Assembly: GCA_010909165.1 (NCBI GenBank)
Contig: MU008181.1
Location: forward strand, 124,001-188,000
Source of the DNA: Anthoceros angustus
Taxonomy: Eukaryota > Plantae > Anthocerotophyta
Direction: 5' to 3'
DNA: 64,000 bases
In this document: piece after piece, positions 1-48,335 of the stretch
Layout of the letters: every line of letters starts with the position of its first letter
How positions within the stretch are numbered: position 1 is the first letter of the stretch
Position numbers and translations under genes: made by a program
Notes under the pieces: model-generated
Told to the model about the DNA's origin: nothing
What the model saw: only the letters and a program-made list of their open reading frames with translations
The model's database searches: none

Positions 1-110
1 CTCTAGGAAGGTGGTCAATCGATTCGGATACAACGTTTTGCCTTCACACCTCTTGAGCTTATGTTTCCTTTCTGTCCAAGTGTGCTGATGGACTTCGTGC
101 TCGGGTGCAG

Positions 111-1382: not shown

Positions 1383-1522
1383 AGTAATCCACAAAGAACA
1401 CTGCGTTAATATAATTTGCAAACAAAAGCTTAACAAAGAATACATTATCACTAGTAGTCCACAAAGAACACTGCCTTAATATAATTTGCAAACAAGAGCT
1501 TAACAAAGAATACATTATCACT
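1383..1522. repeat. 70-bp direct tandem duplication (2 copies)
   Basis: agtaatccacaaagaacactgcgttaat...atcact (1383-1452) is followed directly by a near-identical copy (1453-1522). Confidence 0.9.
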
Positions 1523-3199
1523 CTTAGTATCGGTGAGCTTTGGTCATATCATTTATGCACCTAGATACGGAAAAACCCGACCATCATCCCTCTCGGTCGG
1601 GAACCTTTTCATTCTTCTAGTGATGGTGAATACGAGGATAACTAAAGCTCACATAGATTGAAGTTCTGAGTGGATAGCTACTCAACGAGCAATACAAACA
1701 GAACTTGAAGATATGATTGCATAGCTACTCAAAAGGCAATACAAACCAAGGGTGCTCGTCAATTTCCCTCAAGCTCTAATATGGGTTAGATCATTTGTAG
1801 TATCAAGATATGAAAAGACTCAACACTAAAACTTATTTACCTCATGGTTACTATGACATCAAATAAGGCCAGCAAAGCCTTTCCTCATATTCATCTCTAA
1901 GAGATTCTAACATAGACATTTGTTAGGCCCGTTTGGTATAAGTGACGGTAAGTCAAATTAAGGTTCTAGCCCTTTATTTATGGTATAAATGATGTAAGTC
2001 AAACTAAGATTTTAGTGCTTTGATGGCACTTTGATGTTAGAGTGCAGCGGAGAGATAAAATGACTAAGTTTTCCAATTAGCAAATCATTCCAACTAGCAA
2101 ATCATGAATGCAAACCAAGATGCTAGAATCACTCATGTTCCAAAAAAGAGATCACACAGATAGATAGTTGGCATGATAATATTGAAGGATATAAAATCAA
2201 CTCACTCAAACAAACAAATGATCAGCAAGATGTGCAGAGTTGAATTGGTAAGATATGTAGAAACACAAAGAAACAACAGCAGAACACAGAGCACAAAACA
2301 CAAAGAAAGTAGCACAGAGCACAAAACACAAAGAAAGTAACAGAACACAAACAAAGTAGCTTTGTTATCAGAACACAGAGCATAAAACACAAAGAAAGAA
2401 GAGAGATTTTATTGAGGTGAAAAAACGATGGGAAAAGCCCATCTAGGAGGGGACAACCAAAGGGGACAAGGGGGTCGAGGTGAAGAGGAGCAACTAAGCT
2501 CCCTACCTAAAGTCACCTACTGCACCCACAATGTCATATGCAGGAAGAATAAACGGCCTGCAAACCACGGAGGTAGAGGAAGATCGTCACCCACCGCCTT
2601 GTGGAGGATCGCTGAGAGCGCCTGAAGTTGAAGGGCAATTGAAACCCGTTGTCGAAAGTATCTTTGTAAGTACGAGAGGATAGCCCGCTTCATGTCTACG
2701 CATGGTAAGCTTTGGCAACTTCCTCAGCCATTTACGTTTCTAGTGCAAGCGAATAAAGAGGTGGCCGCTTGCATCCCGCTATATTTGCGGACCTTGAGAG
2801 CCGGCCTCAAATGTAACTCGATGTTAGTGATGACTGGCGGAGATGGTGTCTCGTGTAGGATCGGTAACCACCACATCACCGAAACACGGTCGCCACGGAC
2901 AAGTGCGGTACCGATTGAGCGACACATGCGGAGTATACATCCGCTCCCTCCATGCCATGTAGCCGCTGGCGATGGCGAACATGACATCGCGGATGGCGTC
3001 GTGAGTGGCAATGCTGTTGCGTGGGGACAACGAGCAAGGTGTAATCAATCATCGAGGCGAGCCGCACTGCAAGTAAGGAGCGAAGAAGCCACAGCCGTGA
3101 GCAAGACTAATCGCATCGCAGAGTGAAGGTGGTTGGTGCGATGTGAAAACCCGTATGCATGGGTGGGCCAATAGCCAGCACTGCGCCTTGAACAAGAGC

Positions 3200-4800
3200 G
3201 GGCCGCGCTCTTGTGGACCTGGGATGGAGGGTCTGAGGAATGTTAGCCTGGAAAGCCGCTTCTCGGCGAGATGCCTCAACCCCAAACCATCGATAATAAA
3301 TGTCGAGAAAGGAGAGAAGTCCTTCCGAGCATCCACCGATAACATGTCCCTAGCTTGCCTCAAGGCGTTTGGAGAGAAGGTTCCCTCCTCCACACTGGTA
3401 CGAGATCCTCCGAAGGGCCTGTCATGGAGGATGAACCGAGAAGCCAAAGCGAGGCGAGAGAGGGCCCAACCGCCTGTGAAAGCCGCCGGGAAGAGACCTC
3501 CGGCAGAGTGCATCTGTGCCTCAAATTGCAGTAGGGGCCTGCAGTGAGCGAGATCGCCCATAGGGCACTCAAAAGCCCACAGCCGTGGATGTCCCGAGTA
3601 TCCATAATCTTCCTATCAAACCGCCGCTGGACAAAAGTGTCGGGGGCGGAGGCGTCGGATGAGGTAACCGGGCGCCTAGCAAAGGAGGAAGTCCTTCCGA
3701 GCATCCACCGATAACATGTCCTAGCTTGCCTCAAGGGCGTTTGGAGAAGGTTCCCTCCTCCACACGTCGAGATCCTCCGAAGGGCTGTCATGGAGGATGG
3801 GAGAAGCCAAAGCGAGGCGAGAGGGCCCAACCGCCTGTGAAAGCCGCGGGAAGAGACCTCCGGCAGAGACACATGCCTCAAATTGCAGTAGGGGCTGCCG
3901 GAGGCAGATCGCCCATAGGGCACTCAAAAGCCCACAGGCCCGGGATGTCCCGAGTATCCATAATCTTCCTATCAAACCGGTCGCCACGGACAAAAGTGTC
4001 GGGGGCGGGCGGCGTGGATGAGGTAACCGGGCGCCTAGCAAAGCAGGAGGAAAGAATTCCAAAGGCTACCTATGTATCCTCCGGCAAAGGAGGTCCTCGA
4101 CATGGAGAGGTCCTCTGAGCCTAGTCCAGAAGCTCAGGTGAAGTCGGAAGGCAGAGGGACCCCTAGAATCCATGATCCCAAAGCCGGGAAGAGACCTCCA
4201 AGAGAGTGCACTGTGCCTCCAAATGTAGGGACGCTTGCCGGGCCGACGCCATAGGGCACTCAAAAGCCCCCGAGCCTGTGGATGTCCCGAGTATCCATAA
4301 TCTTCCTATCAAACCGCCATGGACAAAAGTGTCGGGGGCGGGCGGCGTGGATGAGGTAACCGGGCGCCTAGCAAAAGCAGGAGGAAAGAATTCCAAAGGC
4401 TACCTATGTATCCTCCGGCAAAGGAGGTCCTCGACATGGAGAGGTCCTCTGAGCCTAGTCCAGAAGCTCAGGTGAAGTCGGAAGGCAGAGGGACCCCTAG
4501 AATCCATGATCCCAAAGCCGGGAAGAGACCTCCAAGAGAGTGCACTGTGCCTCCAAATGTAGGGACGCTTGCCGGGCCGACGCCATAGGGCACTCAAAAG
4601 CCCCCGAGCCTGTGGATGTCCCGAGTATCCATAATCTTCCTATCAAACCGCCATGGACAAAAGTGTCGGGACTGAGGAGGCAACAGATTTGATGAGGTAA
4701 CTGGCGCCTAGCAAAACAGAGGAAAGAATTCCAAAGGCCACCTATGCATCCTCCAAAGAAAGGAGGTCCTCGACATGGGAGAGGTCTCAGAGCCTAGTCC
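3200..4800. repeat. Internal tandem repeats (~335-355 bp, 4 full anchors plus partial copies) within the retrotransposon ORF
   Basis: The anchor ggatgtcccgagtatccataatcttcctatcaaaccg recurs near 3587, 3943, 4279 and 4613. Units 4066-4399 and 4400-4733 give identical small ORFs in the track. Confidence 0.9.
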
Positions 4801-6924
4801 AGAAGCTCCCGATGAAGTCGGGGAACCGGGGGACCCCTAGAACTGCATCCCAAAGCCGGAGCAATCTCCCGAAACTACAAAGTAGGTAGAATCCGGCGGA
4901 GACGGGCTGGCATGCCTTGACCTTCAAGTCCACCAAAGAAAGCTCATGAGAGAAGAGCTCAAAGGCCTCCTTAACTTTGTCCCTGTGCCCGAGGATGTGA
5001 GTCGTCTGGTGAGAAGGAAGACATGTGTGGCCGAGAAGGCGGCCCTGACAAGTGAGCAATGGCGAAGAGAGCACGCGCCAGTGGGCCTTACACAGTACAT
5101 GTGGCCGATTCCAAGACAGAGATAGCAAATCCTGAAGAGACGTTCTTGTGCTAGTAGTAGAGGTTGGAGGACCTCCCGTAGAAGCATCGGACAAAAGGTA
5201 TAAGGCTCCCAGGACGCCGCCAGCATCTCTAAGCTCCTCGAAGATGACGCTCCTAGAAATGGTAGTGAAGACGTTCTTGACATCAACCTGTAAGACCACC
5301 CACTCCGGGTGGGTATCAAGGCATGCCTTCACTCCAAGCACCACAGACTCACAGCCTCCCGAAGTGGCAATGCCAAATTGAAGGGGTTGAGGTCTTGGAG
5401 AAGAGAGCGCGAAGGGCAATAGTGCGGTGAGTAGCCGCATGAAGGCTTTCTGACGCAGTGGCGCGAGGCTGAGCAGGCTTGTCCATAGCGACAAGCCCGC
5501 TAGCCGCAAGAACATGGGAAATCCGGTGGTGTCTCACCAGCCACCGCAGCGGCCAGAGAAAAGAGTTCTGGGAAGCCACTAGATGGATCTTCAGGGAGAA
5601 AAAGGTCCCTAAGGTGTTCAAAGACCATTCCTGACAACCCGGCAGATGAAAGACGTGGGGTCGTAGAGAGTGCCAGAGCAAAATCTGCCCGGTCCGGGAG
5701 AAGGATCCTCCGGACGAGTCGATATGTCCGGGGATGGCATCCTTGGGTCTTTGGATGGAGGCGAAGGGCAACAATGGTCTCCTGAGCGGGGCCAAGGAGG
5801 TCGAAGAGCCACAGCGTATGACATACTCACTGCACTGGCCAAGCGGCTTGCAGCAGCCGAGTTTGTTGCATTACAGAACATTCCAAGCTGCATGTGGATT
5901 CCGCCCGAGCCTTGGCAAGACGCGAGCAAAATCGCCGAGAGAGAAGGGATCCTCGGGACGTAGTCGAGATATGTCCGGGGATGGCATCCTTGGGTCTGGA
6001 TGGAGGCAGGCAACAATATTGTTGGTCAGGTCTCCTCGAGCGGGGCTAGGGAGGGTCGAAGAGCCACAGCGTATGACATACTCACACACTGTGGCGGCTT
6101 ACAGCAGCGAGTTTGTTGCATTACCGGGACTGTTCAAGCTGCATGTGGATTCAGAGCCTTGGCGACGCGCAAAGCCTCCTCACGGAGGGATGCCCTCGCG
6201 GCCCGAAGCGCAGCTAGCAACTTCCGATGCCCATAAGCCCCCTAGAATCAAGGCACCATTGGGAGAAGCGGGAGAAGGCACCAAGCTCGTCTGGGATCGG
6301 CGCAAGGCGATCCAAGGGAAGGCAGAATGCCAAAGGCATCATCATGAAGGTGGCGGGGAACCCTGCGGAAGATGCGCGGGCATGGAAAGCGGGTTTCAAA
6401 CATCCGAAGTATGTGATCCAGCTGACCCCGTAACCATTCCCACGAAGAGAGATGCACGAAGGGCGATCTTGGCCTTGAGCACGCTCAGGCTGGAGGAGGT
6501 CGTGATGTACACTTGGGCAGCCCAAGTAATCTGTTCGAAATCTTTATGCATGTACCCAATGTGGGTTTTCACCCCTTGACAGTGGCGAGTTGAGCACAGA
6601 CAAGACACGGAGTGTCATGCTTGATCACGGTGTACCAAATTGGGGAGGTACTAAAAGAACCCATAAACACCGGTCGGAGGTGGCGGGGCTCACACTCGTG
6701 ATGTGAGCTCCGTATGGCGAACCCCAAAAGGCGAGCCAAAGAGCTCTACGTAGGGGCGCAACCCACGTAACCACCGACCCACCAAACTAGCGCCGCGCGC
6801 CGCAATTTCTGCAACCAAAAGCCGGGGTAGAAATCCACCCCTAGAAAGGCGAACAAAATTGAAAAATAAATTCCCACCTCCACCACGATACCACATGGCA
6901 GCATGACTCCCGGTGATACTAGCG

Positions 6925-8045
6925 GCGTGAACCCCGGCCGCGCCCGCCCGCGCCCGCACCGCCCGCCTCCGCGCCACCCGCCGCGCTGAGCCCACTCCCG
7001 CGCCCACCGCCACCCTACCTCCCGGGCTTTCCTACCTCCGCAGCGGGGCCTTGAGCCCGGCCCGGCCCCGCGGCCGGGACTGCCCGAGCCCGCCCGCCTC
7101 ACCGCCCGCCACGGAAGGCACCTGCGGCAGCCTCGCACCTCGCCCGCACCCGCCGCTCCGCGCGCGCCCGCACCGCCCGCCTCCGCGCCCGCACCGCAAC
7201 CTCGCCCGCACCACAATCGCTCCCGGTGCCGCACCGTGCCCCGTACGCATGGCGCCACTTTCGCACTCCACTCCCGCGCCCGCCGCTTTCAAACCCACTC
7301 CGGTCCCGGTCCCGGTCCGCGCTGCGTCCCTCACCCACTGCGCCATTATGCACTCCGCCGCTCCCGCCGTCCGCTCCGCTCCGCTCCGCGCCCGCGCACC
7401 GCACCGCACCCACCGCGCACCGCACCGCACCGTGCACTCCGCGCGGGCACCTCCGCGCCCGCGTCCGGTCCGCGCCCGCCGCTCCCGCCGTCCGCTCCGC
7501 GCCCCGCGTCCGGTCCGCCCGCGCCGCGCGCCGCGCCCCTCCCGCGCCACCCGCCTCCGCGCGCCCCGCTCCGCCACCCGCCTGCCTCCCCGCTCCGCCG
7601 CCACCTCGCCCGCCACTCCCACGCCACCGCCCGCGCCGCGCGCGCCCGCGCCCGCCTCCCCGCTCCGCCTCGCGCCCGCGCCTCCGCACCCGCCTGCCTC
7701 CCCGCACCCGCACCGCACCCGCACTCCCGCACCCGCCCGCGCCTGCACTCCCGCCGCGGCCGGGCACCTCCGCGCCCGCCGCCCGCCCGCCCGCCGCTCC
7801 GCCTCCCGCGCCGCCCGCGCCCGCGCCGCGCGCCGCGCCCGCGCCCCTCCCGCGCCACCCGCCGCCCGCCTCCCGCCACTCCGCCGGCCGCGCCTCCGCC
7901 ACCCGCCCGCGCCGCGCTCCGCGCCACCGCCCGCCACTCCCACGCCGCCTCGCCTCGCCTCCGCCGCCCGCCCGCCGCCCGCCTCCTCACCGCCCGCTCC
8001 CTCACCCCCGCTCGCTCCCTCACCGCCGCCCGCTCGCTCAGTGTG
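6925..8045 (-). repeat. Extremely GC-rich, strand-skewed low-complexity tract (probable 5' UTR of the retrotransposon)
   Basis: Almost only C/G; the plus strand is C-rich and the minus strand G-rich, with degenerate ccgc/ccgcac/ccgccactcccacgcc units. The overlapping A/G/R/P-rich ORFs are compositional artefacts. Confidence 0.75.
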
Positions 8046-9784: not shown

Positions 9785-12700
9785 TTATACATGTCTGCTG
9801 GTGATGAGTCCAGGTCCGGATGTGGCACACATCGTGCTTTCTCCGTTTTGAGTCATAGTTGTTTCAAGTTTGGTTGACTCTGGGCAATCCTCATCACCAA
9901 CCAGAAAGCTATGCACCAGCCCGTCCATGTCTGTCCACCAGCTCTGCCCCGGCTGCTTCCATGCCCTGGTTTTCTTTCTCCTGGCCTGCATCTGCTGTGC
10001 CTGCTCCCACATCTGAGCCCCTGTGTATATGTTGGACATCAAGACAAATGCTGCGGCATCTTTCTGGTCTAACTTCATTGCTTCGTCAAAAGCATGACGT
10101 CCGACCTCCACGTTGCCCCACTTCCGGCAAGTACTCATGAGAGTGTGCCAAACTGCAGCATCACGTGTCACAGGCGTTGTCCTTACTAAGGAGAGTGCCT
10201 CATCCAGGTATCCTGCACGACCCAGGACATCCACCATGCACGTGAGGTGGTGAGCCGTGGGAGTGATGCCGTAGTCTTTGCTCATGGCCTCAAAATACTC
10301 GAGCCCCTTGTCCACTAGCCCCGCATGACTGCATACTGTAAGGACACTGAGGAATGTGATGCCGACTGGCCGTATGCCATCATTCTGCATTTTCTGGATC
10401 AAGGCAAAGACCATTTCACTGTCTCCTTGACTGGTGTAGCCTGCAATCAGCGCATTCCAGGCGACGATGTCTTTTTCGTGCAGCGCATCAAACACCTGCT
10501 GTGCATCAACCATGCTCCCAGACTTGCCATACATGTTTATCAAACTGCCAGCTACAACCACATCAGCAAGCAGCCCATTTTCTTCAATCTGGGCATGCAG
10601 CTGCCTTCCCAGGTTCAAAGCTGCCACATTTGCACAAGCCTGTAGGAGGCACACAAAGGTCACCGAATCAGGTGCAGCCATGCAGCCTTCTTGCATAGCA
10701 GAGTAGAGCCGAAGGGCTTCCTGCCCCATGCCCTGCTGGGAATATCCCGCTATCATGGCATTCCACGTCGCAACATCCTTCTGACCCAGGCGGTCAAAGA
10801 CGCTGTGAGCATCTTTCAAGCTGCCACACTTCACATACATATTTACCAAACTGCTGGCTACAAACACATCAGATTCATGTCCTTGTTCTCTGATCTGCAT
10901 ATGAAGCTCCTTTCCCTTCTCCAGAGCTCGGGTGCCCACACTTGCACATGCCTGCAGGAGGCACACAAATGTCACGGAATTGGGTATATCCATGCCTTCT
11001 TCTTGCATAATGCCGAAGAGACGAAGGGCTTCCTGCCCCATGCCCTGTTGCGAGTACCCTGCAATAAGAGCAGTCCACGTCACCAGATCCTGTCGATTGA
11101 TGCCGTCGAACACACTCTGAGCATCTTCCAGGCTGCCACACTTTGCATACATGTTCACCAAGCTGCTGGCTACAAACTCATCACCTTCATGTCCTGATTC
11201 TCTCAGTTCTGAATGAAGCTGCTTTCCCATCTCCAAAGCTGGGGGGCCCACACTTGCACAGGCCTGGAGCAGGCACACAAATGTCACAGAATTCGGTACA
11301 GCGATGCCTTCGTCTTGCATGATACTGTAGAGACGAAGGGCTTCTTGCCCCATGCCCTGGTGCAAATACCCTGAAATAAGAGCAGTCCACGTCACCACAT
11401 CCTTCTGATCAAGACTGTCAAACACTTGCTGAGCGTCTTGTAGACTGCCACACTTTGTGTACATGTTTACCAAACTGTTGGCTACATACACGTCAGCTTG
11501 ATGTCCTCCTTCTTTGATTTCTGCATGAAGCTGCCTCCCCTTCTCCAAAGCTGGGGTGCCCACACTTGCACATGCCTGCAGGAGACTTGCGATTGTCACA
11601 GCATCAGGGATGGTGACGCCTTCTCCTTGCATGATACTGTAGAGACGAAGGGCTTCCAACCCCATGCCCTGCTGGGAATATCCTCCTATCAGGGCATTCC
11701 ATGTCACCACATTCTTTTGACTAAGGCTGTCAAACACTCTCTGAGCATCTTCTAAACTACCACACTTTGCATACATGTTCACCAAACTATTGGCAACAAC
11801 CGCCTCAGCTTGAAGCCCCTGTTCTCTAATACGCCGATCAAGCTGCTCCCCCGTCTCCAGAGCTTGGGGACCCACACTTGCACATGCCTGCAGGAGGCAG
11901 GTAAACGTCACAGAATTGGGTACAACGATGCCCTCTTCTTGCATAAGGCTGTAGACACGAAGGGCTTCCTGCCCCTTGCCCAGCTGGGAATACCCTGCAA
12001 TAAGGGCAGTCCACGTCACCTCATCCTTCCGACCAAGTCCGTCAAAAACTCTCTGAGCATCATCCAAACTACCACACTTTGCATACATGTTTACCAAACT
12101 GCTAGCTACAAACTCATCTGCTTGAAGTCCTCGTTCTCTAATTTGTGCATGAAGCTCCTTTCCCATCTCCAAAGCCGCGGTCCCCACACTTGCACATCCC
12201 TGCAGGAGGCACACAAATGTCACAGAAGTGGGCACAGCGATGCCCTCATCTTGCATTACACTGTAGAGAGACAGAGCTTCCTGCCCCATGCCCTGCTGGG
12301 AATACCCTGCAATTAGAGCAGTCCAGGTCACCACCTCCTTCCCACTAAGTCCGTCAAACACTCTCTGAGCGTCTTCCAAGCTCCCACACTTTGCATACAT
12401 GTTCACCAAACTGCTGCCTACAAACACATCAGCTTCATGTCCTGCTTCTCTAAGCTCAGCATGAAGCAGCTTTCCCATCTGCAAAGCTGGGGTGCCCACA
12501 CCTGCACATGCCTGCAGCAGGCACACAAAGGTCACAGAATTCGGTACAGCGATCCCTTCCTCATGCATGACACTGTAGAGACGAAGAGCTTCCTGCCCCA
12601 TGCCCTGCTGAGCATACCCTGCAATCAGAGCAGTCCATGTTACCACATCCTTCTTACCAAGCCCGTCAAACACTCTCTGAGCATCTTCCAAACTGCCACA

Positions 12701-13360
12701 CTTGGCGTACATGTTCACCAAGGCGTTACACACAAACAAATCAGACCCAACCGCACTGGCCAGCACGTGAGCATGCACCTGTTGCCCACTTTTCAAGTCT
12801 GACCCCCTTGCACAAGCCTGGAGGGCTGCCACAAATACATGGCCATCTGGCTTCACACTTGACCCGCGCATCCGATGATACAATTCTACAGCCAGAGTTT
12901 CTTGTCCGTGTTTAACATGCGCAGAAATTATGGCAGACCATGTGAAGGCATCGGGTTGAGCAACCGCTGAGAACACATCCATTGCATCTTTCAAACTCCC
13001 ATGAGAAGCATACATCCGCAGAACGTGGTTGCCCAAGAACGTATCTGTCTGAAACCCCTGCTTCACCATGAAAGCATGGACGCGACGACCCAGAACAATA
13101 TCCTTCTTGCCTACACATTTCCTCAGAACCGTATAAAAAACAGGTCCGGTAACACAAGTGTCCGTCTGCACCAGAACTCCCAGTGCCTCTACAGCCTCAG
13201 TAAGCCGGCCCTCATGACACAGCTTGCTCACGGTTCCCCCACTCACGCCCCAATCAGCCCTGCCATGCTCCAGACAGCCATTGCTCACAGAAGCATGCTC
13301 TGAGCCTACAGATGCAAGAACCCGTCGCTGAACGCTAACTCTGAACAAGCATGCCTCCAT
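9785..13360 (-). CDS. PLS-class pentatricopeptide repeat protein, organellar RNA-editing factor type, with E1/E2 and a truncated WW-type DYW start
   Basis: Uninterrupted ORF; first in-frame ATG at 13360 (the track starts at GTG 13399). It has about 29 P/L/S motifs (nine MYAKCG-type S motifs), P2-L2-S2, E1 (AAVWHTLMSTCRKWG), E2 and PGQSWWTDMDGLVHSFLVGD, then a stop before any HxE/CxxC motif. Confidence 0.95.
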   Translation of the reverse strand: MEACLFRVSVQRRVLASVGSEHASVSNGCLEHGRADWGVSGGTVSKLCHEGRLTEAVEALGVLVQTDTCVTGPVFYTVLRKCVGKKDIVLGRRVHAFMVKQGFQTDTFLGNHVLRMYASHGSLKDAMDVFSAVAQPDAFTWSAIISAHVKHGQETLAVELYHRMRGSSVKPDGHVFVAALQACARGSDLKSGQQVHAHVLASAVGSDLFVCNALVNMYAKCGSLEDAQRVFDGLGKKDVVTWTALIAGYAQQGMGQEALRLYSVMHEEGIAVPNSVTFVCLLQACAGVGTPALQMGKLLHAELREAGHEADVFVGSSLVNMYAKCGSLEDAQRVFDGLSGKEVVTWTALIAGYSQQGMGQEALSLYSVMQDEGIAVPTSVTFVCLLQGCASVGTAALEMGKELHAQIRERGLQADEFVASSLVNMYAKCGSLDDAQRVFDGLGRKDEVTWTALIAGYSQLGKGQEALRVYSLMQEEGIVVPNSVTFTCLLQACASVGPQALETGEQLDRRIREQGLQAEAVVANSLVNMYAKCGSLEDAQRVFDSLSQKNVVTWNALIGGYSQQGMGLEALRLYSIMQGEGVTIPDAVTIASLLQACASVGTPALEKGRQLHAEIKEGGHQADVYVANSLVNMYTKCGSLQDAQQVFDSLDQKDVVTWTALISGYLHQGMGQEALRLYSIMQDEGIAVPNSVTFVCLLQACASVGPPALEMGKQLHSELRESGHEGDEFVASSLVNMYAKCGSLEDAQSVFDGINRQDLVTWTALIAGYSQQGMGQEALRLFGIMQEEGMDIPNSVTFVCLLQACASVGTRALEKGKELHMQIREQGHESDVFVASSLVNMYVKCGSLKDAHSVFDRLGQKDVATWNAMIAGYSQQGMGQEALRLYSAMQEGCMAAPDSVTFVCLLQACANVAALNLGRQLHAQIEENGLLADVVVAGSLINMYGKSGSMVDAQQVFDALHEKDIVAWNALIAGYTSQGDSEMVFALIQKMQNDGIRPVGITFLSVLTVCSHAGLVDKGLEYFEAMSKDYGITPTAHHLTCMVDVLGRAGYLDEALSLVRTTPVTRDAAVWHTLMSTCRKWGNVEVGRHAFDEAMKLDQKDAAAFVLMSNIYTGAQMWEQAQQMQARRKKTRAWKQPGQSWWTDMDGLVHSFLVGDEDCPESTKLETTMTQNGESTMCATSGPGLITSRHV

Positions 13361-13829
13361 GAACAACCTACCGTGCAGGGAGAGACCATCTGTCAACACG
13401 AACTACCTTGGGCTTGGAAGAACTGCAGAGGCAGTTTTCTACAGCCCCGTTGAGAAGATGGATTGCTCAAGGGTTCATGAAAACCAAATGCTTTCATCTA
13501 CACTACAAGTGGTGAATTGCTGGTTGAACAACCTACGACATCCCAAAATGCTCAGACGGCCTTACACAACCAGTTTCGCATGACCAAAGTCTCCAGCTCT
13601 GCACGAGAAGGGTTCAGTGCCGCCAGAGATGGGCATGGAGCATTATGACTTTTAGCCGATTGATTTGCTCCTCCTTTGAACAATAAGTATATGCTCGCCT
13701 TCAACCATCACTCCTTCCACGACGTGATTATACTACTTGAACAACGTCATTACATCAAAAGGCAGGACCAAATGGCCCTTCAAGGTTCCTCTAGTAGGAA
13801 GAAGAGCGCATAAAAGAGGAGAGGCTCCC

Positions 13830-13900
13830 GAGCCCACCATAACCGTATACTGTGCGTACACTGAGGAACGTGATGCCGACTGGCCGTATGCCATCGTCGT
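13830..13900 (-). pseudogene. Isolated PPR L2-motif relic
   Basis: Reads DDGIRPVGITFLSVRTVYGYGGL and closely matches NDGIRPVGITFLSVLTVCSHAGL at ~10320-10385 at the DNA level. Confidence 0.7.
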
Positions 13901-14088
13901 ATTTTTTTCTTATAAATGTGTGTCCATTTGGCCAAAGCCCATTTTGGCCTAAGCCATTCGGACACACATAGGATCTGAAGTAACTGACGGTCAGTCATAA
14001 TTAATAATTTATCATTAGGTATTTTCTCCCCTATTTAATGGCTTAGGATTGAGGTTTTTCCATATGTAAGCGGCGGCGGCAACGGACC

Positions 14089-16161
14089 ATGTTCGAAACG
14101 GAGGAGGAGGCAGACAACGTCCGAATGGAGGAGGCGACGGACCATGTGCGGATGGAGGAGGTCGGGACAGAGGAGGTCACGAACCGTGTCCAAATAGAGG
14201 AGCGGCCAGTGGTAGGGATTTCTTTCGGTGCGGAATGCTGCACGTTGTGTTGCTGCTGGCGCGAGGATGTGAACCGTCCACTTTGGCAGTACACACATTG
14301 GAAATTTCCTATCGGTCTCTACTACTTCAAGAGGAAGAATAAGCTGAAGGCTGCACACTGGGGCTTTAGAGCGGAGCAATTGGGAGCAGGATTTACAGCG
14401 GAGCAATTGGGAGCTTGCTTGACAGCGGAGCTACTGGCAGCAGAGGAATCGACATCGGGAGACGGATCGACGTGGAGAGGAGCATCAGGAGCAAGGGTAT
14501 CCACGTCGGGTCCAGCACCGTCGACGTCGTCAGGAGTAGTACAACAGACGTCGGGCGAAGAGAATGGCATTTATGTGGCCAAATTTTGGGGACATTTTGG
14601 TTCAAGTAAGGCCTCGGCCCTAGGCTGGTGGAGGGGAGAGCAGAAATTTTCACTTCCAGGGCACATTCCGGAAGATTTGTCCCGGGCCACTGCTATGACT
14701 GACTACTTAAGCAAGCTGTCTAACTTCGTTCTTGGTTTTCTAAGGGTGGGATACAGGAAGATTGACATGACGATGAGGAATATCCAGTGGTGTCTGGCTG
14801 TGCCAAGGATTTGGGATGATTCCTTCATCCAAACCTTGCGCGAGTGCTTGGGGAGGGCGGGCATGGTGGCAGGTCTCCTTTGCCCGCCACAAGCTGCGTT
14901 AACAGCAAGTTCCCATCCTCCGCTCTTTGTCCTGGAGTGGGAAGCTGCAGCGTTGGTTGGCTTTCAGGAGTTCAGCGCGGAGGAGGGATCTACGGTGGTA
15001 GTGGTAGATATTCGGAGTGAGTTTACGAATATTGTCCTTTTGCAGAAGTATGAAGCAGCCTTCGCTGTTGTGGAAGGACGCACGGTAGACGGTGCTGGTT
15101 GTTGTCTCAATGATCTGGACAAGAGGTTCTATGACATGCTGCGGGAAAAGATTGGATGCTTCGATGAGCTGGAGCGGCAGAACCCTGCCCTCAGGGCTAT
15201 CATGCACAAAAAATGGCAAGGATTTAGTGGTAATCACTGGAACGAGTTTGCAAACGAAACCGACTTCCAGTTGCCTGAACTCTTCCAAACTGCTTGGAAG
15301 AAGTACAACCGGGACCGTGGTGATGTGAAAGATCCCATTATCCCGGAAGTCCATTTAGACTGGGCGAAGATATGCGGTCCACTTGCAGACAAAATCATCC
15401 AGCTGGTCGAAGAGCACCTATTAGAATGGCCAGACGTAAAGGGACTGTCCCTGGTGGGTGAACCCCTAATTCCGGGATACTTGGGACAGAGGATGAGGGC
15501 AGCCTTTGGAACCAGGTTTGCTGACGGCATGAGGATTCCGTCCAATCCCAGCAGCGCAATATGCCATGGAGCTGTTATGTTTGGGTCATCTTCTGCCTTG
15601 CAATTGTCCCGAAGGTCTGCCGAGTCGGGTCGTGATAGACGATGCTCCATCTATATTAACAATCCCTGGGAGCTGTTTCTTCAAAAGCACTTATCTGACT
15701 GGGATGAAAGTTTCAGGTCGTGTCTCGAGGCTATCACCGTGACTTGTTCCAGCAGTATGAATCTTCCGGATACGTCACAGGCACAAGTAGTTTTGGATTT
15801 CATCAATGAAACGTATGACCACAGCTTGCGACACTCTAAACTTCTCATGAAGACGGGGGTGGAGTTTCAAGCTCGTCTTGTAGATGCAGCTAAAAGTGAG
15901 GCGAGTTTGGCTCGAGACGAGGCGCGATTGGCTCGAGATGAGGCGCGTTTGGCTCGAGATGAGGCGCGTTTGGCTCGTTTGGCTCGTTCTATAGATGCAG
16001 AGCAGGCGCTATGCCAAATCTGTCACGACAGACGTCGTGATGTCATGATTCGTCCATGCGGTCATGCTCAGTATTGTCAAGCTTGTATACAAAAGCTTGA
16101 GAGGAAAAGATGCCCATCTTGCAGACTTTGGATCGAGGAGCTTTGTCCCTTCTTTAGTTAA
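14089..16161 (+). CDS. Intronless HSP70/actin-fold (HSPA12-like) protein with degenerate nucleotide-binding motifs and a C-terminal C3HC4 RING finger
   Basis: 690-aa ORF. HSPA12-like blocks: VVGISFG, WCLAVPRIWDD, VLEWEAAAL, VVVDIRSEFTNI, LDKRFYDMLREKIG. These are followed by (EARLARD)n and the RING CQIC-x11-CGH-x3-CQAC-x8-CPSC. Confidence 0.85.
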   Translation: MFETEEEADNVRMEEATDHVRMEEVGTEEVTNRVQIEERPVVGISFGAECCTLCCCWREDVNRPLWQYTHWKFPIGLYYFKRKNKLKAAHWGFRAEQLGAGFTAEQLGACLTAELLAAEESTSGDGSTWRGASGARVSTSGPAPSTSSGVVQQTSGEENGIYVAKFWGHFGSSKASALGWWRGEQKFSLPGHIPEDLSRATAMTDYLSKLSNFVLGFLRVGYRKIDMTMRNIQWCLAVPRIWDDSFIQTLRECLGRAGMVAGLLCPPQAALTASSHPPLFVLEWEAAALVGFQEFSAEEGSTVVVVDIRSEFTNIVLLQKYEAAFAVVEGRTVDGAGCCLNDLDKRFYDMLREKIGCFDELERQNPALRAIMHKKWQGFSGNHWNEFANETDFQLPELFQTAWKKYNRDRGDVKDPIIPEVHLDWAKICGPLADKIIQLVEEHLLEWPDVKGLSLVGEPLIPGYLGQRMRAAFGTRFADGMRIPSNPSSAICHGAVMFGSSSALQLSRRSAESGRDRRCSIYINNPWELFLQKHLSDWDESFRSCLEAITVTCSSSMNLPDTSQAQVVLDFINETYDHSLRHSKLLMKTGVEFQARLVDAAKSEASLARDEARLARDEARLARDEARLARLARSIDAEQALCQICHDRRRDVMIRPCGHAQYCQACIQKLERKRCPSCRLWIEELCPFFS

Positions 16162-18685
16162 CTTCCTTCTGAACATCTTAGTGGATGAACATCGTTCTGC
16201 GTGCAGGTTGTCCGCCTGATGGCTGAGCTGCAAGATTCGGAGAGATACCAGCAGCACCAGAACTATTTATTAGCTTGTGTTGTATCAGAGCGGGCTTGTG
16301 GAAAATCTGTCGATGGAGAATCTATCTTCATGTTCTTGAGTCTGGTTCTTCCCAGGGTTATCAGTCGGTCCCCTCTTGCATCCATCGCTTTTCAAGAGAA
16401 CAGCTCCGTGCTTTGCGACGATCACAGTGTGATGTAAAATTATGTAACCTAAATTCACGGGATTGCTCTTGACGTCTGGTCTCTGGATTCGTGTCATTCA
16501 CCGTGCTAGATATCGGAGTTGGTGCACGGACCCTTATCATTGATTGCGCTGACAAGGAGTTGGATGTGGTTGAGATGGCAGTTCACGCTAATGTGGTCCG
16601 ACTCGGAAATGGCTATTTGCCCGGCCGTGGTGAGCTTGCTTTGCTTCAGTTTTTGCTTTTATTGTTTGTTGTTGTTGTGATTTCAGTTCGTAAACCAGTC
16701 ACCCAGCCGCTGCCTTCCTGTCCAGATATCCGAGCAGGGGCAAGGACGCGTTGGCGGCACCGCATCTCTATCCTCGACCCAATGACGTTCCTTACAAGGC
16801 ATATACGATGGCCCGAATATTCCTTTCCTTTTGGTGGTGAATGCCAACGGACTGCAGTGCTCATCAAACTGCCTCAGCTCACACTGCCCGCACTCACGCA
16901 AGATGCGGAGCGTGAAACGGAGAAAGTCATCTGATTCATGTCTGAACCAACTTCCGTACGCGGTTACCATTGTGATCCGTGACTCCTGACAGCAAATTGC
17001 TGGAAGGTGTCATCCATTCGGTTCCGGATCCGATCTGAGAGGTGGCTAATCACAAATGTGTGGTGACTCCTTGAAATCTTTTCTCCTGAACGATTTCTCC
17101 TGACTTAAGAAAGATCGGAATAGAGAAAGCGTCATCTGGTACATCATACCGCGCAGGGCAAGGCCTAGCTGTACATCGCGCAGTGTCAGGCCTGCTTTCG
17201 GAGGGTTTGTCCAGGAAGCCTTAGCGTCGGTGCTTCGCAGGGATGTGCGCAGCGGCACGCTGGATCCCCTGGATCACATTGGACGACAACAACGTTCGCA
17301 CCGTCCATCTATCTACGTTGTACGGGCTACAGAAAACAACCCGAATAATTTGCTTGACATACAAGGTAGCATGACGTCACCTTGTCCTTCATTTCTCGTA
17401 CGCTGGCCTGCTGAGATCGAAAAGGCTGGCCAGCTGCCATCGTCCTTGGGCGGGATAACACGAGCCTGTGGCCGCCAGGTTTGTTATGCACCGTGGAATG
17501 GAGAATTTTTCTCGAGAGCATTTTTGAACGGCATTTCACGGAGCTGAAAGAGCAGACAGGATGGCGTCCCAGTCTGCTGTTTTGTCTCAGGTCTGAAATT
17601 GCCCTGGCGCATGGATTCCTGACTTGCAAAATCGGCTGCTGGCAGGGAGTCTGGCAGTTGAACCATCCGACGTGCTTCCGCCACACACTTGCTCCTGGAA
17701 GCAGAAAAGAGTTCGGGAGGGCGAATTGTACGGCAGGTGGGTGAGCCGTCCGTCCTGCCCAAACAGTAGTGTGTCATGACACCTTGCCCATCCTGGTCCC
17801 CAGTCCCCGACGACGCCCGCCGTCGCTAGGTGCCTGTCGCCTGCTTGGTGCCACAATCTCTTTGAATGTGACAGATTGATCTGCTAAGCAGATCTTCGCT
17901 GTAGTGTGGAGAGACGACCATCCTTGGGCTGCTTGTCCCAGCGATTTGGAGTCCAGCTGCCTCACAACATTTCCTGCACGGCTTCAAAGAGAGTTGAAGT
18001 TCAGAGAGGAATTGCAACACTCAAGTCACATTGCAGTGAAGTTCAAAACGCAGCGTCTGTTTGCATACTCGAAAGAAGCCCGCATGCTCCTCCTCCGCGA
18101 CCTGGGTGGATCACCGGCTCTATTGCTCCGGGCCGCCTTCCATCCATCCCTTCACAGCTGTAACGGCCCGCGTCCCTTCCCGTCCCGTTCCGTCCCGTCC
18201 CGTTCCGGGCCGCAGGAGCAATGTCTCCCCGACGAGGGACGAGGGAAGAGGGCGCACTCTGTCGCCAGATCGCGCGCGCTGGCGAACTTGAAACGCATTT
18301 GTGAAGACGTCTGAGTTAGGGCAAGACTAGGGCCAACAGGTTCGTTTCCCGCCTTCCCTCCTTCGCGAATTGCATGCCTGAGTCAGGCACCCGCAACAGG
18401 ACATAGTAGACTAGACTAGCGCTCGGATCGTATGCGCACGACACCGTTTCCTCGACTCGTCCACGAAAAAATTCATGGACAGTAGCTCGACAACCAACCG
18501 TAGCTGAAGTTGAAGCTGGTGCTGTCGTGAAGCTGAGGAGATTCGTCGCTTGGCTCCTAGCAAGGTTTCTCTGCAATGTGTTGCACTTGCTGGGCACCGA
18601 ATTCTGGCCTGCTGCTAGAGTTCTGGATTGCATCGACCTGCTCGTCGGGGGTGTAGCACATTCTGTGTGCACTGGACGTCACACT

Positions 18686-21600
18686 ATGGCGAGCGTTGCA
18701 CGAGCAATTGAGCAGGCGGCTACGCGCAAAGTAGATGCTGACCTGTGGTGGGATTCCTTCGAATCGCTCTTCCACAGTTTGGACAAAATTGGAGCTGCAC
18801 AGAGCACTGGGGTACCTGAAAACGAGGGCTCTGGTGAAGCAAGCAGCGCACAGTCTGGGGTCCTGGATGCACTGGTACGCGCCGCGCCGTGTTATGTATC
18901 GGAGCTTATGATTTATGCTGCGAGAACCGGAAAGCCCTGGGTTTTAGAATGACTGTTGTTTGCCGAATTGGTAGCCTCTCTGTGGGATTCAGTCGTGCGT
19001 GCATCTGTCGGATTCTCCGACAGTAATGCGCGGGATTGAGAGCCGTCATGCTTGCTTGGTGGCTTGCAGGTTAGTAGACTAGCTTCGCACCAGGAATGGC
19101 TTCTCAACAGTGTCGCTTGTTTCAAGCCTCCGAGCTGCACATCGGAATCAGCATTGAGCTCTGCCCAGATTGCGATTGGGGACCATACACTGGAAATCAA
19201 GCCGGAACGGAAAGCCGTGGCGCTGCAACTCAGCAAGCACCTGGTGTGTAGCGAAGTTGGTGCACTCAGGGCACGGGCGGTCCCTGCATTCATGGCTAAA
19301 TATTCGTGTGGCTGGGTCTGATCAGGTGCTGGACGAAGTACAGACATATTTATTGCTCAGCAGGGTTTTGGAGTCCACAACAGATGGAACAGTGACTGTA
19401 GGCAGTGAACTTCTCCATAATGTAAGGCTTCTGCCGTCTTTTTTAAAGCTGGCAGGCATGGGTCTCCTCCACTCCAGTCCTACTGTGTAGAGGCAAATTG
19501 TTGCAGTCTCGTGCATGTCCACGCAAGAGATACTCAAGGTCTTCAGGGTCGTGTGTGCAGGTTGAGATGTTCTATTTTCTGGAGAGACAATGTCTTCTGA
19601 AAAGTCTTCGACTTCTTCTAGCTTTCCAAAGTGAGTTTCTGCAGATCGTGCTTGGGTTGGGGTAATTTCCCACTATGTTGAGAAGAGTGGGTTCGGTCGC
19701 TTAAGTGAGAAAAGGCTCTTTCGTGGGCTGCAGTGGCTGAACTAGGAGTGAGGTCTAGCTTTTGTGGCGTTATAGACGAGGAAGTCAAGAAACTTCTCTC
19801 GAATGACCTTGAAGGGAAACTGATTGAGGTTCTGAAAGTACAGCTTTGTGCCGCACAGCCTCAGCATCTGGTATATATTCTGGACTACTTTGCTTTAGTT
19901 TGCAACAAAATGCAGGTAGACCTACATTTCTCCTGGGCCGATTGGAACTGGATAGTTGTGGGGTATTAAGTTACAGCATGATGGTTATCTGTTCAGGAAC
20001 GGGAGCATGCCGATCTATGGGCAGAAGAGATGGCCTTAGAACAAACACTTCTTTTGGACATACTTTTTCTACTGTACTATGAGCCTTTATGTTCCTGCAC
20101 AGCAAGGCGGTTGGAAGGGCTGCTTACCATCTTTCAGGTACCTCAGTTGACAGATCTGCGGACATTTGAAGTAGAATTCACACATATTGATATTCATAGA
20201 GCTGTATTTAAATACGTAACATTCCCCATTGGCAGGAATTTGTGTTTGAATCAACTGCTGGGGAGAGGTTGTCAGTCACACCTGAAGCAGAAAGACTAGT
20301 CAAGCATGTGAGACACCAAGCTCTTCTCATTCTGCTGGAAGCTCTCGATCTGGAGAATCTGCTTACGATGGTTCATGGTGAAGTTCCATACAGGTCTGAA
20401 ATTCGTAATCATCTGACACATGCTTCTTAATCAGTGTCTCATCAAGAGTTTCTCTTAATGTTGACCAAAACTTAGTATACTGGTTTTATGTTGCCCAGCC
20501 AAGGAGGGCACTCGATCACTGTTGAAGATCTTGGGCAGTTGGATTGCATAATGGCAGGCCTGGACTTTGCTAGCATCCCGGACTATGCACCTCTGTTGTT
20601 GGGATGGGGAACTTTTATCTGTCTCGTGACCATTTTACCAGAGACTGCTGGACAGTCACCAATCCCTGTAAGTATCCAACTTTTCTGTCTCCAGGCGTCC
20701 ACAACTACCACTTCTGCAGTCTTATTATGCCTCATGAGTGGGTTGTACTCTTTTGCAACATAGTTGTTGATGTCATCTTGTGTGTCTTGCAGGAGATAGA
20801 TCACACTCAGTATGTGCGGCAAGCCTACCAAGCTGGGAGTTACAACTTCTTATTGGAACTTCTTCAGAGTGAGCCATTGCAAGAATCAGATGTAAGATAT
20901 TACTTTAATTCCTTCCTCCTGAGGCTACTGTTTGAATCGATTATTGTGCTCAGTGTATGCAAGCTGCTGCCGTGTTTCAGATCCAAGGAAGTGGATATAA
21001 GAATGTGGTGAAAACCCTGATAGCTGCCCTCCTAGCAGCGTACGATTTTGCTGGCCAGGTGAGTAGAGATTGTCATTCTGCTGTGCCACAGTGAGGGTGT
21101 TTGATTTCCAGAGCAGATTGTCTGGGACCCACCAAAGATTCTGCACCTGTATTGAATGCACTAATGCACCTACATTTTCCACCCAGGTAGATTCTGATGG
21201 TTTTGATTCCCTAGTTGACATCCTATGTGAGGTCTATCGGGGTCAGGTCAGGATACTTGATTTCAGAGTGCTTATCGTGCTTGGATGTTACTTTCAAAAA
21301 AAGTCATAAAAGTCACAAAGTAACATGCAATGTCACAGGAGGCCTTGTGTCTTGAATTCTGGGACCGTGAAAGTGTGATTGATGGGCCCATCCGCAGTCT
21401 CCTGTTCTCTCTAAGAGAATATTTTCCATTCCGATCAGTTCCTCTTATTCGTCTACTTGCAGCCCAGTGTGAAGGAACCTGGCCAGCCGAATGTGTGTAA
21501 GTATGTACAACTTTTGCTGATTGGTTACTTGGAAAACTGCACTTCTGCCTCTTTTGTCATGCAGTTCTTCAATGTTGGAATGTCATCTTCTTCTTTAGGT

Positions 21601-24600: not shown

Positions 24601-27600
24601 GACACTGTTACATAGGTGTGTACTTATATTCTGCATTTTCATGTTTGTTATCATGGTGCTAGTGTTGCATCTAATAGCCTGGGTACCCTGTGTGCATGCA
24701 GCCACCCCAAGATATTAGCACATGTACTGCACTTGATGGCCTCATTTTGGCAAGGTGGCATGGAGTACTTCTGTGTTATAGAGAATCTTAGGACTCGTGA
24801 TGGCTTCTGGAAGATACTGGCAGGCTGTGTTTCGTTCAGTGGCTCAAACAGACTCTTGTCCAACCTCATCGTCGCAGTAGATTCCAGGGAGCCCATTAGG
24901 GCCTGCATGAGTAAGCAGGAGACATTCACCTATGCTCACCTTTACCGGTGTGAGGCGACTGTATTCAATATCCTGGCGCACGATATATTCTTACAGCAGC
25001 ACCTGGTGTATCTTGCTGATTCCAAAAGTGAAAGGACAGCAGATGTGAATCAAGAGAAGAATAAGACCAACAACAAACCCTTTGTCAGCAAGGAGTCTGG
25101 TGCTGTGGATGTTGTCAAACAATGGCGTGGCCCTTTAGAGACCAGAAACATGTTGCATGCCTATACGGGTACTTTGTTTGATAAAGATGCTATCCAACAT
25201 GCTAAGGTACTAAAAACCGCTCCTAATATGCTGTCGGGCTGTGCTGGCCCTTGTTGGTTGTGTGGTCCTATTAGTGACGTCCTGGTCATCATGTGGTGAC
25301 TACTTGGCTGTGCTTATGTTCAGGGCTGTGTGCCACTTGTTTTCTGCTCTTTGCAGGATGATACAAGAGTCATGGTTGTGGGCTTAATGAGTAAAATTCT
25401 ATCTGGTACTGACAGGGGATTAAGTTCCTCCCTGGCTGGGAGGATAAGACAGGCAGCAATGCAGGTATACACTACGTAGCTGATCATGTGTCAGGGCTTG
25501 TTGACAGTTTTACAGGATCTGAGATAAGTTTGTGTTGTTTCTCACAGGTCTTCCAGCTTCCCCCTTTTGTTGAACTTTTAGGCCAGTATTCCTCTCGAGG
25601 ATACAGGTACTGTTCTTGACCAGCTGGTTAAGTTGGTTACATTGTTAACCATGTGAAAATCTGACAGACAAAATTGTTGGCAGCTTGTGTCCATTTTTTA
25701 AGTGCTTCTCTTGTTTGTTCTCAGCTATGGCGAGCAGCTGCAAACTATGCTCATGAGTGACCTGTATCATCACCTTCAGGGTGACCTTGTGAGACGACCA
25801 ATACCAGCAGGGCCATTCCGACAGATTGCAGATTATTTGAGGAACAATGACTTCGATGTTCTACTGAAGCCGAATTCAGAACAACGAATGCCATACTTAT
25901 ATCCTGCCTATGGGGACAGCTTTTTGTACAATACCTTTGCTTTAGAGAGTGAATTGGGTTATGAGTGGTGGTCCCAGTCAGACAGCCCCCAAGTTCTGCC
26001 ACCATCTGAGGCAGAGAAAACGTTGCGCTCCATGAGGCATGCTAATGAGATGGCTGCATTGGGTGATGCGCAGCTGGCTGCTTTGAGGGCTTTCTCAATG
26101 TTACTCACTGTCACCATCTTTGACAAGCAATTGGTACTTGCAACTCCATTCTGCAACGTTGTCTGGCCGCCTTGGATGTCTATTGTCGTGTGCTGTTTGT
26201 TAGAGTATTAAATTTTCTGGTGCTATCAGTTCTTGGATTCAAGTGAAATCTGTGGTTGTGCAGATCCATGGTGGATCTACGGCCAAAAATCAGACATGGA
26301 GTGAATCTGATCTGGAATCTGGCATCGAGGCTCTTTGTAAAGACATAGAAGTGGCAGTGGTAGCTGTAGTACCTTTGGGGGATCAAACAGGTTACATGCC
26401 AAGCTTCATCACTGCACAAGCAGAATTACTGCTTGTACTAGTTCGATGGCTTTGCAACCGCAATACAGGTGCTTCATCTATGTCAAGGAAGCAACTGGGT
26501 CTTTGTGCTAAGGTCATCCGGACAGTTGTGGCATGCCTGAAGCTCATGCTAGGGTTTCAGACCTTGTCCCAACTGACCAAAGGGCTCGTGATCAGCTTGT
26601 GCAGTAGTTTTGTGCTGGCATTGGATAGGATTTATATGTGTAGCACTGAAGAACCAGGGAATCAGGAATCGGAAGGAGCTGAATCAATGGGTGACACCTT
26701 TGCAGACGTCACGCTTGTAGGCCTAGGGTTCTTACCTCTCTTATGCGCCGCAGTTGAGAATGAAGAGTATGTGAGCATCGCACTAGCTGGGGTCAATCTG
26801 CTCATTAAAGGGTTCCTGGCACCACCACGATGGTTTCCTATTGTGCAAAACGATTTCCCACTGCAACTTGCCTTGTCTCGAATGCGGCTGGACAAGGGCA
26901 CTGAATACTTGAAGTTGATGCTGAACACCTGCTTATCGTTCTCTTACACAAGGCCTGGTGGGGAGCTGCTGGTATCGTCAGGCATTTTCTCACATCTTAT
27001 GCATCTGAGTGAGCAATTACGAAGCAGTGCTGCTTCCAGCATATACATAGAGGGTCCGTTTGCTGTGTGGCATAAACATAAGAGAGACCAGGAAGGGCTC
27101 TGGGGTTTGAGTGTGTCAGTAGTGACAGCATTGCTGCGGTCATGTGCTAGTGAGGACATTGCAGAGCGAGCTTTGACATATCTAGGATATGAGAAGGACA
27201 ATATGTTGTCTGCACTCTGCTCTCCAATCTCTTCTATGGATGCGCAGGGCAGGAAGAAGGCCAAAGTTCAACACCCACATACTAGTCTTATTGCACTGGA
27301 AGAGACCCAGAGAGTAGTTGCCCTACTTTGTGAACTTTCAAATCATCAGTCACTGTGGTTTCATTTCTCTCAGGACTCAATGTTGCAGTACGGGGAGATG
27401 ACCATCCATCTTTTAGCATTTATTGCAAAGGAGGGTTTCACCAGGCCTGGAATTCATCGAGGGGATGCAAGTGTCAGTTGCTGCCCTGTGCTTAAGCAAG
27501 AAAAAGCAGCTCACAGCAGACCTTCCATTATAGGTAGCAACTGTGCCTGGTTTGCAGTTGCTGCAAGAGGTTCTGCAGCAAGTGAGAGGCCCCCTTCTCG

Positions 27601-28402
27601 GGCCTCTGGCTCTCGCAGTCCATCACCTTCAAAAACGTCCTCAACCCTTCGATTGTCAAGCAGCCCATCATCTTCAGGGATCCTAGCAAAAAGTTATAGT
27701 TCTGGTGGCATCCAGGTGCCATGTTCGGAGTATTCTGATCTTGTTGCCATCGAAGTGTATAAATTAGCAGCTTTGTTACTGAGGTTCTTGTGCAAGCAAG
27801 TGCAGCAGGCTGTGTCAAGAGTGTCGTCTGGTGGACCTCTTGACTTAGTTCATTTTCCAGAACTACCAGCTCCAGACATTCTGCACAACCTGCAAGTGAG
27901 TGACCTTCCAGTTAGCATGGCTGTGGGCCTTTGCAAGGTGTTTTTAAAGTCTGATAGGACAAACTGCTCTTAGTTGACAGTGCTGGTGATGTTTCTTTTC
28001 AGGATCAGGCCATGTCGGTGGTTATTGACGTGTTTACTAACAAGACTGGGAGAGCAACGGAGGGACAGGTACAAGACTTCTGCTGTATACTCCTCGGCAT
28101 TTTGGAGAAGGCTTTGTGTCTGGAAATTTGCCTTTGGCGAACCTGTAATGTTACCCCTCTTCCACTTCGTTCCGATGACTTCTCTAGAGAATTCAAGGTT
28201 CTGCTTACTGGTAAGCGGCATCAAAAAAAAATTGACATTGGTTGCTTGGTTTGTTCGCTGTTGTTAACTCTGCAATCACGTCTCACTGCTTTGGGTTGGG
28301 GTTGGCAACTTGCTTCCAGCTGTCGAAGGACAGAAGACTTTGGAGAGTTCATTGCAATCGTTGAGGCGGATTATTTTAGTAGCACATCCTGGAATTTGTT
28401 GA
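18686..28402 (+). CDS. NUP188: Nucleoporin NUP188 (multi-exon)
   Basis: Collinear exon peptides match plant NUP188: VDADLWWDSF, WLLNSVACFKPP, LDEVQTYLL, ERQCLLK, LLDILFLLYYE, LEALDLENLLTMVH, IDHTQYVRQAY, FWDRESVIDGPIRSLL, LEICLWRTC. The last exon 28320-28402 ends LQSLRRIILVAHPGIC*. Not every internal splice site was resolved. Confidence 0.92.
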
Positions 28403-48211: not shown

Positions 48212-48335
48212 TTCAAATAGCAGGGGCAGCGGCTTCCATTCATGATTTATGCGAAGCATTGGACGTTTGTCTACTTCTTTGCTCTTCTCCTTCTTAAATT
48301 TGAGGCTCTGCTCCTATTGATGAGCATCACAAGCA

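Follow-up and report, generated by a model that had tools for sequence, protein, structure and literature searches.

What becomes of an Hsp70-type domain once its nucleotide-binding loops have been replaced and a RING finger stands at the end of its chain? This question is raised by a gene in a 64,000-nucleotide stretch of the Anthoceros angustus genome (contig MU008181.1, positions 124,001 to 188,000), referred to here as the window. The gene is an intact single-exon open reading frame (ORF) of 690 codons plus a stop codon on the + strand (14089 to 16161); it begins with ATG and runs to its stop without interruption, as a preliminary description of the locus had stated. A stop-free run of 690 codons has a chance probability of about 5e-16 given the base composition of the ORF, and the remaining five frames of the same stretch contain 15 to 33 stops each. 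The anatomy of the encoded protein is secure: an HSPA12-like Hsp70 nucleotide-binding domain (NBD) forms a shell whose nucleotide site is ruined, and a heptad helix and a RING finger follow it. That a seed-free land plant here carries a real and lineage-specific chimera, in which the HSPA12-like shell with its lost nucleotide site serves as the binding module of a RING E3 ligase, is a reading to which we give about even weight.

Fold of the N-terminal domain

Alignments and models assign the N-terminal part of the ORF protein to the Hsp70/actin fold, in its HSPA12-like form. The domain occupies residues 38 to 503 (14200 to 15597, + strand), an assignment that draws on AlphaFold2 (AF2), Foldseek, VIA-align, phmmer, and a profile of the family. 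In an AF2 model built with a 129-row alignment, most 10-residue blocks between residues ~40 and 510 have a pLDDT above 90 (pTM 0.70). The best 50 Foldseek matches to this model are all NBDs of Hsp70, DnaK, BiP, or Hsp110 (E ~1e-12), with Ssz1 at rank 1. Structural alignment to the ATPase of Ssz1 (4gni_B) with VIA-align gave a Z score of 24.2 over 341 residues (model residues 38 to 502) at ~17% identity, and across Hsp70-type chains the Z scores were 22.6 to 24.2 with 341 to 360 residues aligned.

The homology is also backed by sequence, with no recourse to predicted structure, because a profile of the HSPA12-like family matches the NBDs of DnaK, mortalin, and BiP at E values of 7e-15 to 1e-12 (7.4e-15 for DnaK). 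An exhaustive HMMER (phmmer) search with residues 36 to 600 retrieved 188 relatives, the best of them at an E value of 1.3e-34 with 37% identity over residues ~185 to 515. Eight of the ten closest relatives scanned match PF00012, six at the gathering score, and the profile positions involved (~112 to 398) are those of the NBD. The ORF protein itself has no match to PF00012 even at an E value of 10; its N-terminal part alone matched nothing in Pfam, NCBIfam, or the PDB sequences, and word-index searches for similar proteins, made with the full-length sequence and with residues 165 to 600, returned no match. Outside the nucleotide-binding loops, motifs of the family align in register with the ORF protein, including K72 (KTxT), AVPRIW (family TVPAIW), LEWEAAA (LEPEAAS), and PSSAICHGAV (PGSAIxxGAV). 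An actin-like HSP70 fold had been proposed for this region in the preliminary description, and the proposal is borne out both by the AF2, Foldseek, and VIA-align comparisons (Z 24.2) and by the family profile (E 7e-15). The same holds for the suggestion that the classical substrate-binding domain is missing: nothing past residue 503 matches the canonical Hsp70 substrate-binding domain or lid by Pfam, alignment, or structure comparison.

A degenerate nucleotide-binding site

All three nucleotide-binding signatures of the domain are altered relative to alignments of the family, which keeps D-F-G-T-T, D-x-G-G-G-T-x-D, and V-G-G-F at 70 to 98% per column. This confirms the changes first read from the ORF by eye as DFGT to SFGA, DxGGGT to DIRSEF, and VGGF to VGEP. 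The phosphate-1 loop, VVGISFGAE (14209 to 14235, + strand; family VVGxDFGTT), reads S45-F-G-A48-E49, with D replaced by S45, T by A48, and T by E49, in columns where the family has D in 94%, T in 89%, and the second T in 70% of its members. The phosphate-2 loop, VVVVDIRSEFTNIV (14995 to 15036, + strand; family LVxDxGGGTVDxV), keeps D307 and reads D307-I-R309-S310-E311-F312-T-N314: the GGG has become RSE, T has become F312, and D has become N314, at family columns of G 93%, G 85%, G 88%, T 89%, and D 90%. In the adenosine motif, LVGEPLIPGYL (15451 to 15483, + strand; family VVGGFSxSPYL), G has become E458 and F has become P459, giving V456-G457-E458-P459 at columns that are G in 92% and F in 86% of the family.

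In total, the ORF protein departs from the family at 9 of 14 key nucleotide-binding positions (S45, A48, E49, R309, S310, E311, F312, N314, and E458). Such a departure is rare: when the 74 relatives with every one of the 14 positions covered are compared, 51 show no deviation and only 8 show four or more. The preliminary description had called the domain catalytically dead, and this stands for the nucleotide loops; it goes too far for the catalytic residues as a whole, as K72, E283, and D307, which correspond to the catalytic Lys, Glu, and Asp, are still present along with G47 and G457. What has been lost is thus the phosphate-binding Gly/Thr loops and the adenosine pocket rather than all catalytic residues. 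We infer that the protein would be unable to bind or hydrolyze ATP in the manner of Hsp70.

Degeneration of these positions is also seen elsewhere in the family. Five relatives (P0047, P0064, P0060, P0099, and P0026) are badly degenerate at 5 to 9 of the 14 positions, and since they group apart from the ORF protein in the tree, the ATP site seems to have been lost repeatedly in the family.

A heptad helix and a RING finger in place of the C-terminal domain

In the alignment, the relatives have in common a beta-rich domain at the C terminus that is ~150 residues long and recognizable by SRIxRKTYG and FGRSxIEV. The similarity of the ORF protein to its family stops at about residue 510. At the place of the beta domain lies a tail of ~90 residues without detectable relatives (15598 to 15873, + strand), modeled with a pLDDT below 50 over residues 514 to 610, for which an Atlas feature search gave no usable match. 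No remnant of the family domain was found when its hidden Markov model (HMM) was run against all six frames of positions 15400 to 19000 at E values up to 100. Together, these comparisons show a copy of an HSPA12-like gene that, to judge by its sequence, has lost its C-terminal beta domain and carries a heptad helix and a RING finger instead.

The helix is encoded by a tandem repeat of EARLARD heptads (15897 to 15977, + strand) that Tandem Repeats Finder (TRF) reports as 21 bp in 3.9 copies, close to the four copies originally counted. The coiled-coil linker that had been claimed for it amounts to a predicted long helix (residues 609 to 639) with an exact heptad period. The array is 48 nucleotides (nt) shorter in a related species, in frame, and it is bracketed by a 19-nt near-repeat, which fits a linker that grew by local tandem expansion.

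The RING finger is of the C3HC4 type (zf-C3HC4_3, PF13920) and spans residues 639 to 683 (16003 to 16137, + strand). It matches PF13920 with 43.6 bits, above the gathering cutoff of 27, at an E value of 2.6e-11. The finger had been described as complete, and all eight zinc ligands are indeed in place (C642, C645, C657, H659, C663, C666, C675, and C678), with the spacing C642-x2-C-x11-C-x-H-x3-C-x2-C-x8-C-x2-C678. Its closest solved structures are the RING fingers of cIAP, XIAP, and CBL. When aligned to the cIAP1 and XIAP RINGs, the ORF protein has the hydrophobic residue of CxIC (I644), the proline of CPxC (P676), and the arginine after the last cysteine (R679), which we take to be the sites of E2 contact in the RING-E2 complexes described so far. 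The RING appears to be competent.

Ancestry of the gene and novelty of the fusion

Alignments and phylogeny place the origin of the ORF in the plant HSPA12-like (atypical Hsp70) family, from which the gene appears to descend. Among named organisms, the relatives closest to it come from a moss (Ceratodon), a liverwort (Calypogeia), a lycophyte (Diphasiastrum), and a fern (Adiantum), and in a maximum-likelihood tree the gene falls into a clade (support 99/99) with five proteins from the read sets of one plant. The terminal branch of the ORF is the longest in the tree, at 2.45 changes per site versus a median of 0.75 (~3-fold). All seven relatives whose loci were fetched are single-exon genes, so that the lack of introns is the norm of the family and no pointer to a retrocopy or horizontal origin. 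The suggestion of such an origin, which the preliminary description had drawn from the missing introns, does not survive these results.

The clade-mates do not share the C-terminal arrangement of the ORF. Four of the five are in the alignment, and in these the C-terminal domain of the family is normal; a RING pattern is present in none of the five. A read-through fusion with a neighboring RING gene has no support, because no RING gene was found directly downstream of the clade-mates. Two other neighbors were recorded around one clade-mate, P0009: in locus L007 (397 to 4068), the next gene upstream, in the same orientation, has a PUB62-63_C domain (a U-box E3 tail), and a BTB gene lies downstream in locus L006. 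Both may be a coincidence. At a locus of Ceratodon purpureus (CM026424.1, region 1 to 7860), a GIL1_IRKI_C gene (2695 to 4458) stands between two HSP70-like genes.

More broadly, a RING pattern was absent from all 150 matches listed (150 of the 188 relatives), a screen that leaves more distant HSPA12-like proteins outside. A word search with the tail and RING (residues 516 to 690) returned one protein, and this shares the RING only. In limited literature searches we found nothing that pairs HSPA12 with plants or bryophytes or that describes a fusion of an Hsp70 NBD and a RING, and a catalogue of plant RING E3 groups makes no mention of Hsp70 (PMC6118397). Within this scope, the statement that the RING fusion is not a described family is upheld. 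The combination appears to be undescribed and has so far been seen in one lineage.

Maintenance of the reading frame

DNA contigs of a related organism span the locus at ~91 to 93% identity. As to insertions and deletions (indels) within the ORF, this species differs from the window only by a -1/+1 pair that cancels out (15339/15342), by a net change of -9 over 14100 to 15935, and by the in-frame -48 in the heptad array. In the 344 nt of 3' flank, six of the seven indels are not multiples of three. The comparison shows a frame that is maintained in the sister species. In addition, 690 codons have stayed open despite 2.45 changes per site, which speaks for selection on the open frame, since free decay would have gathered many stops.

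Several observations weigh against a functional, maintained chimera. It is the family alignment, and not the ORF sequence alone, that gives the fold its confidence, a single-sequence AlphaFold model of the ORF protein being unusable (pLDDT 36). Neither the ORF protein nor a close orthologue was found in the protein collections searched, and an exact look-up in a collection of 15 billion proteins was negative. The density of substitutions in the ORF (7.3 to 9.1%) matches that of its flanks (7.8 to 9.0%). In a subset of the differences, drawn from residues 236 to 382, pN/pS is ~1.1, with 15 nonsynonymous and 4 synonymous codons set against 340 sites of the first kind and 101 of the second, and for the differences listed in this region an omega below 0.4 is rejected at the 5% level. 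At positions 16014 to 16015 (+ strand), where the window has CC, a short-read contig from the same organism (depth 12) has TT, which changes codon 643 from CAA to TAA and cuts the RING after its first cysteine. Finally, a putative RNA run, whose type was guessed, covers the ORF by a single 252-nt contig only (14135 to 14386). The evolution of the ORF thus appears, from these comparisons, to be fast and close to neutral, with weak constraint on individual residues, and the gene may therefore evolve under conflict or be only marginally useful.

The main rival to the E3 reading builds on these data. It holds that the chimera, whether it once worked or was never important, is drifting toward a pseudogene, and that its open frame is a remnant with no maintained function. 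A pN/pS of about 1, equal divergence of ORF and flanks, the stop at codon 643, the lone RNA contig, and the disappearance of the catalytic motifs and the tail domain would all be expected of such a gene. The short-read contigs of the same organism point the same way, being 8 letters shorter than the window over 13910 to 15285 and 4 letters shorter over 15312 to 17000; they are also 3 letters shorter over 13400 to 13829, and these shortfalls could be either strain differences or residual indel errors of the assembly. Drift does not sit easily, however, with a 690-codon frame that is still open after the longest branch of the tree, with indels that are in frame within the ORF of the related species and frame-breaking right after its stop, with a RING in which the eight ligands and the residues for E2 contact are all retained, or with a hydrophobic core that suits the NBD fold in a high-confidence model. 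We regard drift to a pseudogene as possible but doubtful.

The surrounding locus

The host is a PPR-rich plant genome. A long single-exon PPR gene of the PLS/E type (9785 to 13399, - strand; 1204 amino acids [aa], at least 19 PPR repeats plus an E motif) stands head-to-head with the ORF across a spacer of 690 bp. Further PPR ORFs lie at 48314 to 50789 (- strand), where the overlapping 48314 to 49150 and 48975 to 50789 may belong to a single PPR gene that a frameshift has broken in two. Three other ORFs have no Pfam match (26243 to 27973, + strand, 576 aa; 31984 to 32925, - strand, 313 aa; 59903 to 60838, - strand, 311 aa). No second copy of the ORF protein was found within the window by tblastn.

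The 690-bp spacer contains a short, very high-copy repeat at 13831 to 13939 (no strand assigned), at which the summed contig depth reaches 5,000 to 42,000 versus a baseline of 12 to 70 in four runs from two organisms. Its hairpin arms are at 13916 to 13939 and 13946 to 13969. The repeat looks like a miniature inverted-repeat transposable element (MITE), and it lies within the presumed promoter region.

Two tandem arrays lie in the 5' part of the ORF. The first (14100 to 14161, + strand; 27 bp in 2.3 copies) encodes acidic VRMEE units at the N terminus and is predicted to be disordered (pLDDT below 50, residues 9 to 32). The second (14365 to 14443, + strand; 27 bp in 2.9 copies) encodes FRAEQLGAG units, modeled as a helix followed by a disordered stretch, and falls inside a variable insertion of the HSPA12-like family in the alignment. 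Short acidic repeats had been described near the N terminus; TRF finds both arrays, and VRMEE is acidic, whereas AEQLG is not.

Discussion

The features of the ORF suggest a course of events in which a copy of an HSPA12-like gene would have lost its C-terminal beta domain, gained a heptad linker and a C-terminal RING-HC finger, and lost most of the residues that bind the phosphates and adenosine of ATP. Because ATP binding and hydrolysis are probably gone, we read the NBD shell as a module that would bind its partners independently of nucleotide. The most plausible ligands would be proteins that dock on HSPA12-type NBDs, either partners resembling exchange factors or paralogous NBDs. The heptad helix could dimerize or space the RING, which in turn would recruit an E2 and ubiquitinate whatever the shell holds. 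The result would be a CHIP-like, chaperone-linked E3 with both parts in one chain. In its fullest form, this proposal makes the ORF protein a one-chain "chaperone-shell E3" whose nucleotide-blind NBD acts as a substrate receptor or decoy, whose frame is under selection while its surface evolves fast, and whose targets are proteins that partner with, or attack, the plant HSPA12-like system. Taken with all of these particulars, it is unlikely to be exactly right.

A special case of the E3 model is an immune-type decoy or sensor, a role related to one raised in the preliminary description. Here the dead NBD would mimic HSPA12-like chaperones that are targeted by pathogen effectors or selfish elements, binding would trigger ubiquitination by the RING, and the gene would be under diversifying selection. 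The very long branch together with a pN/pS of about 1 and a preserved frame, the difference in linker repeat number between species, and the presence/absence-like variation of the RING caused by the stop at codon 643 are what one might see in such a gene. Pfam scans of the window revealed no immune-type neighbors or domains, however, and relaxed constraint explains the same data; fast, near-neutral change and a stop before the RING suit a conflict gene no better than a gene that is dispensable or decaying. We consider the immune role quite unlikely. An origin of the gene as a retrocopy or by horizontal acquisition is highly improbable: its single exon and an Atlas language-model feature search, which returned HSP70/DUF8340 clusters with fungal and mollusc clusters among them, would speak for it, but the closest relatives are plant genes, the seven relatives checked are equally intronless, the clade with proteins of one plant is firmly supported, and the GC content at third codon positions (GC3) is the same as that of the adjoining PPR gene (0.54 versus 0.53).

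The reading of the ORF as a chimeric E3 gains some perspective from known systems. To our knowledge, no function has been agreed on for the HSPA12-type Hsp70s, which form an orphan chaperone class, and we found no plant members in the literature searched. The ORF protein resembles this class in its Hsp70 NBD fold, a variable insertion after the first lobe, the missing substrate-binding domain, the single exon, and the AVPRIW and LEWEAAA motif variants; the comparison covers the plant relatives. It differs from these relatives in its degenerate phosphate-1, phosphate-2, and adenosine motifs, in having a heptad helix and RING in place of the beta domain, and in its exceptional branch length. Ssz1/HSPA14 of the ribosome-associated complex is the best structural match, but at an identity of ~17% it is not a close relative. 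Ssz1 is an Hsp70-fold protein that acts as a scaffold and not as a cycling ATPase; it still binds ATP, retains a partial substrate-binding domain, and has no RING.

CHIP/STUB1 likewise couples an Hsp70-type module to ubiquitin ligation, and its likeness to the ORF protein is a functional analogy only. CHIP is a TPR and U-box protein that binds the C terminus of Hsp70 in trans. A Pfam scan detected neither a TPR nor a U-box in the ORF protein, which, unlike CHIP, would carry its Hsp70-like module in the same chain and in a nucleotide-blind form. With the C-terminal RINGs of the IAP, XIAP, and CBL type, the ORF has in common the Pfam family, the exact spacing of the ligands, and the CxIC ... CPxCR pattern, a likeness limited to ~45 residues; unlike those proteins, it has no BIR, SH2, or other partner domains.

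The weak constraint on residues and the stop allele limit the significance of the finding, and the gene could be an evolutionary experiment of short duration. In that case, it would usefully illustrate how domains are shuffled within a birth-and-death family and would not stand for a new pathway. If the E3 reading is true, a natural fusion of a RING to an Hsp70 NBD without its ATP site would show that the NBD shell can act as a plain binding module, and the substrates and partners of the ligase would offer a direct handle on what the HSPA12-type class binds.

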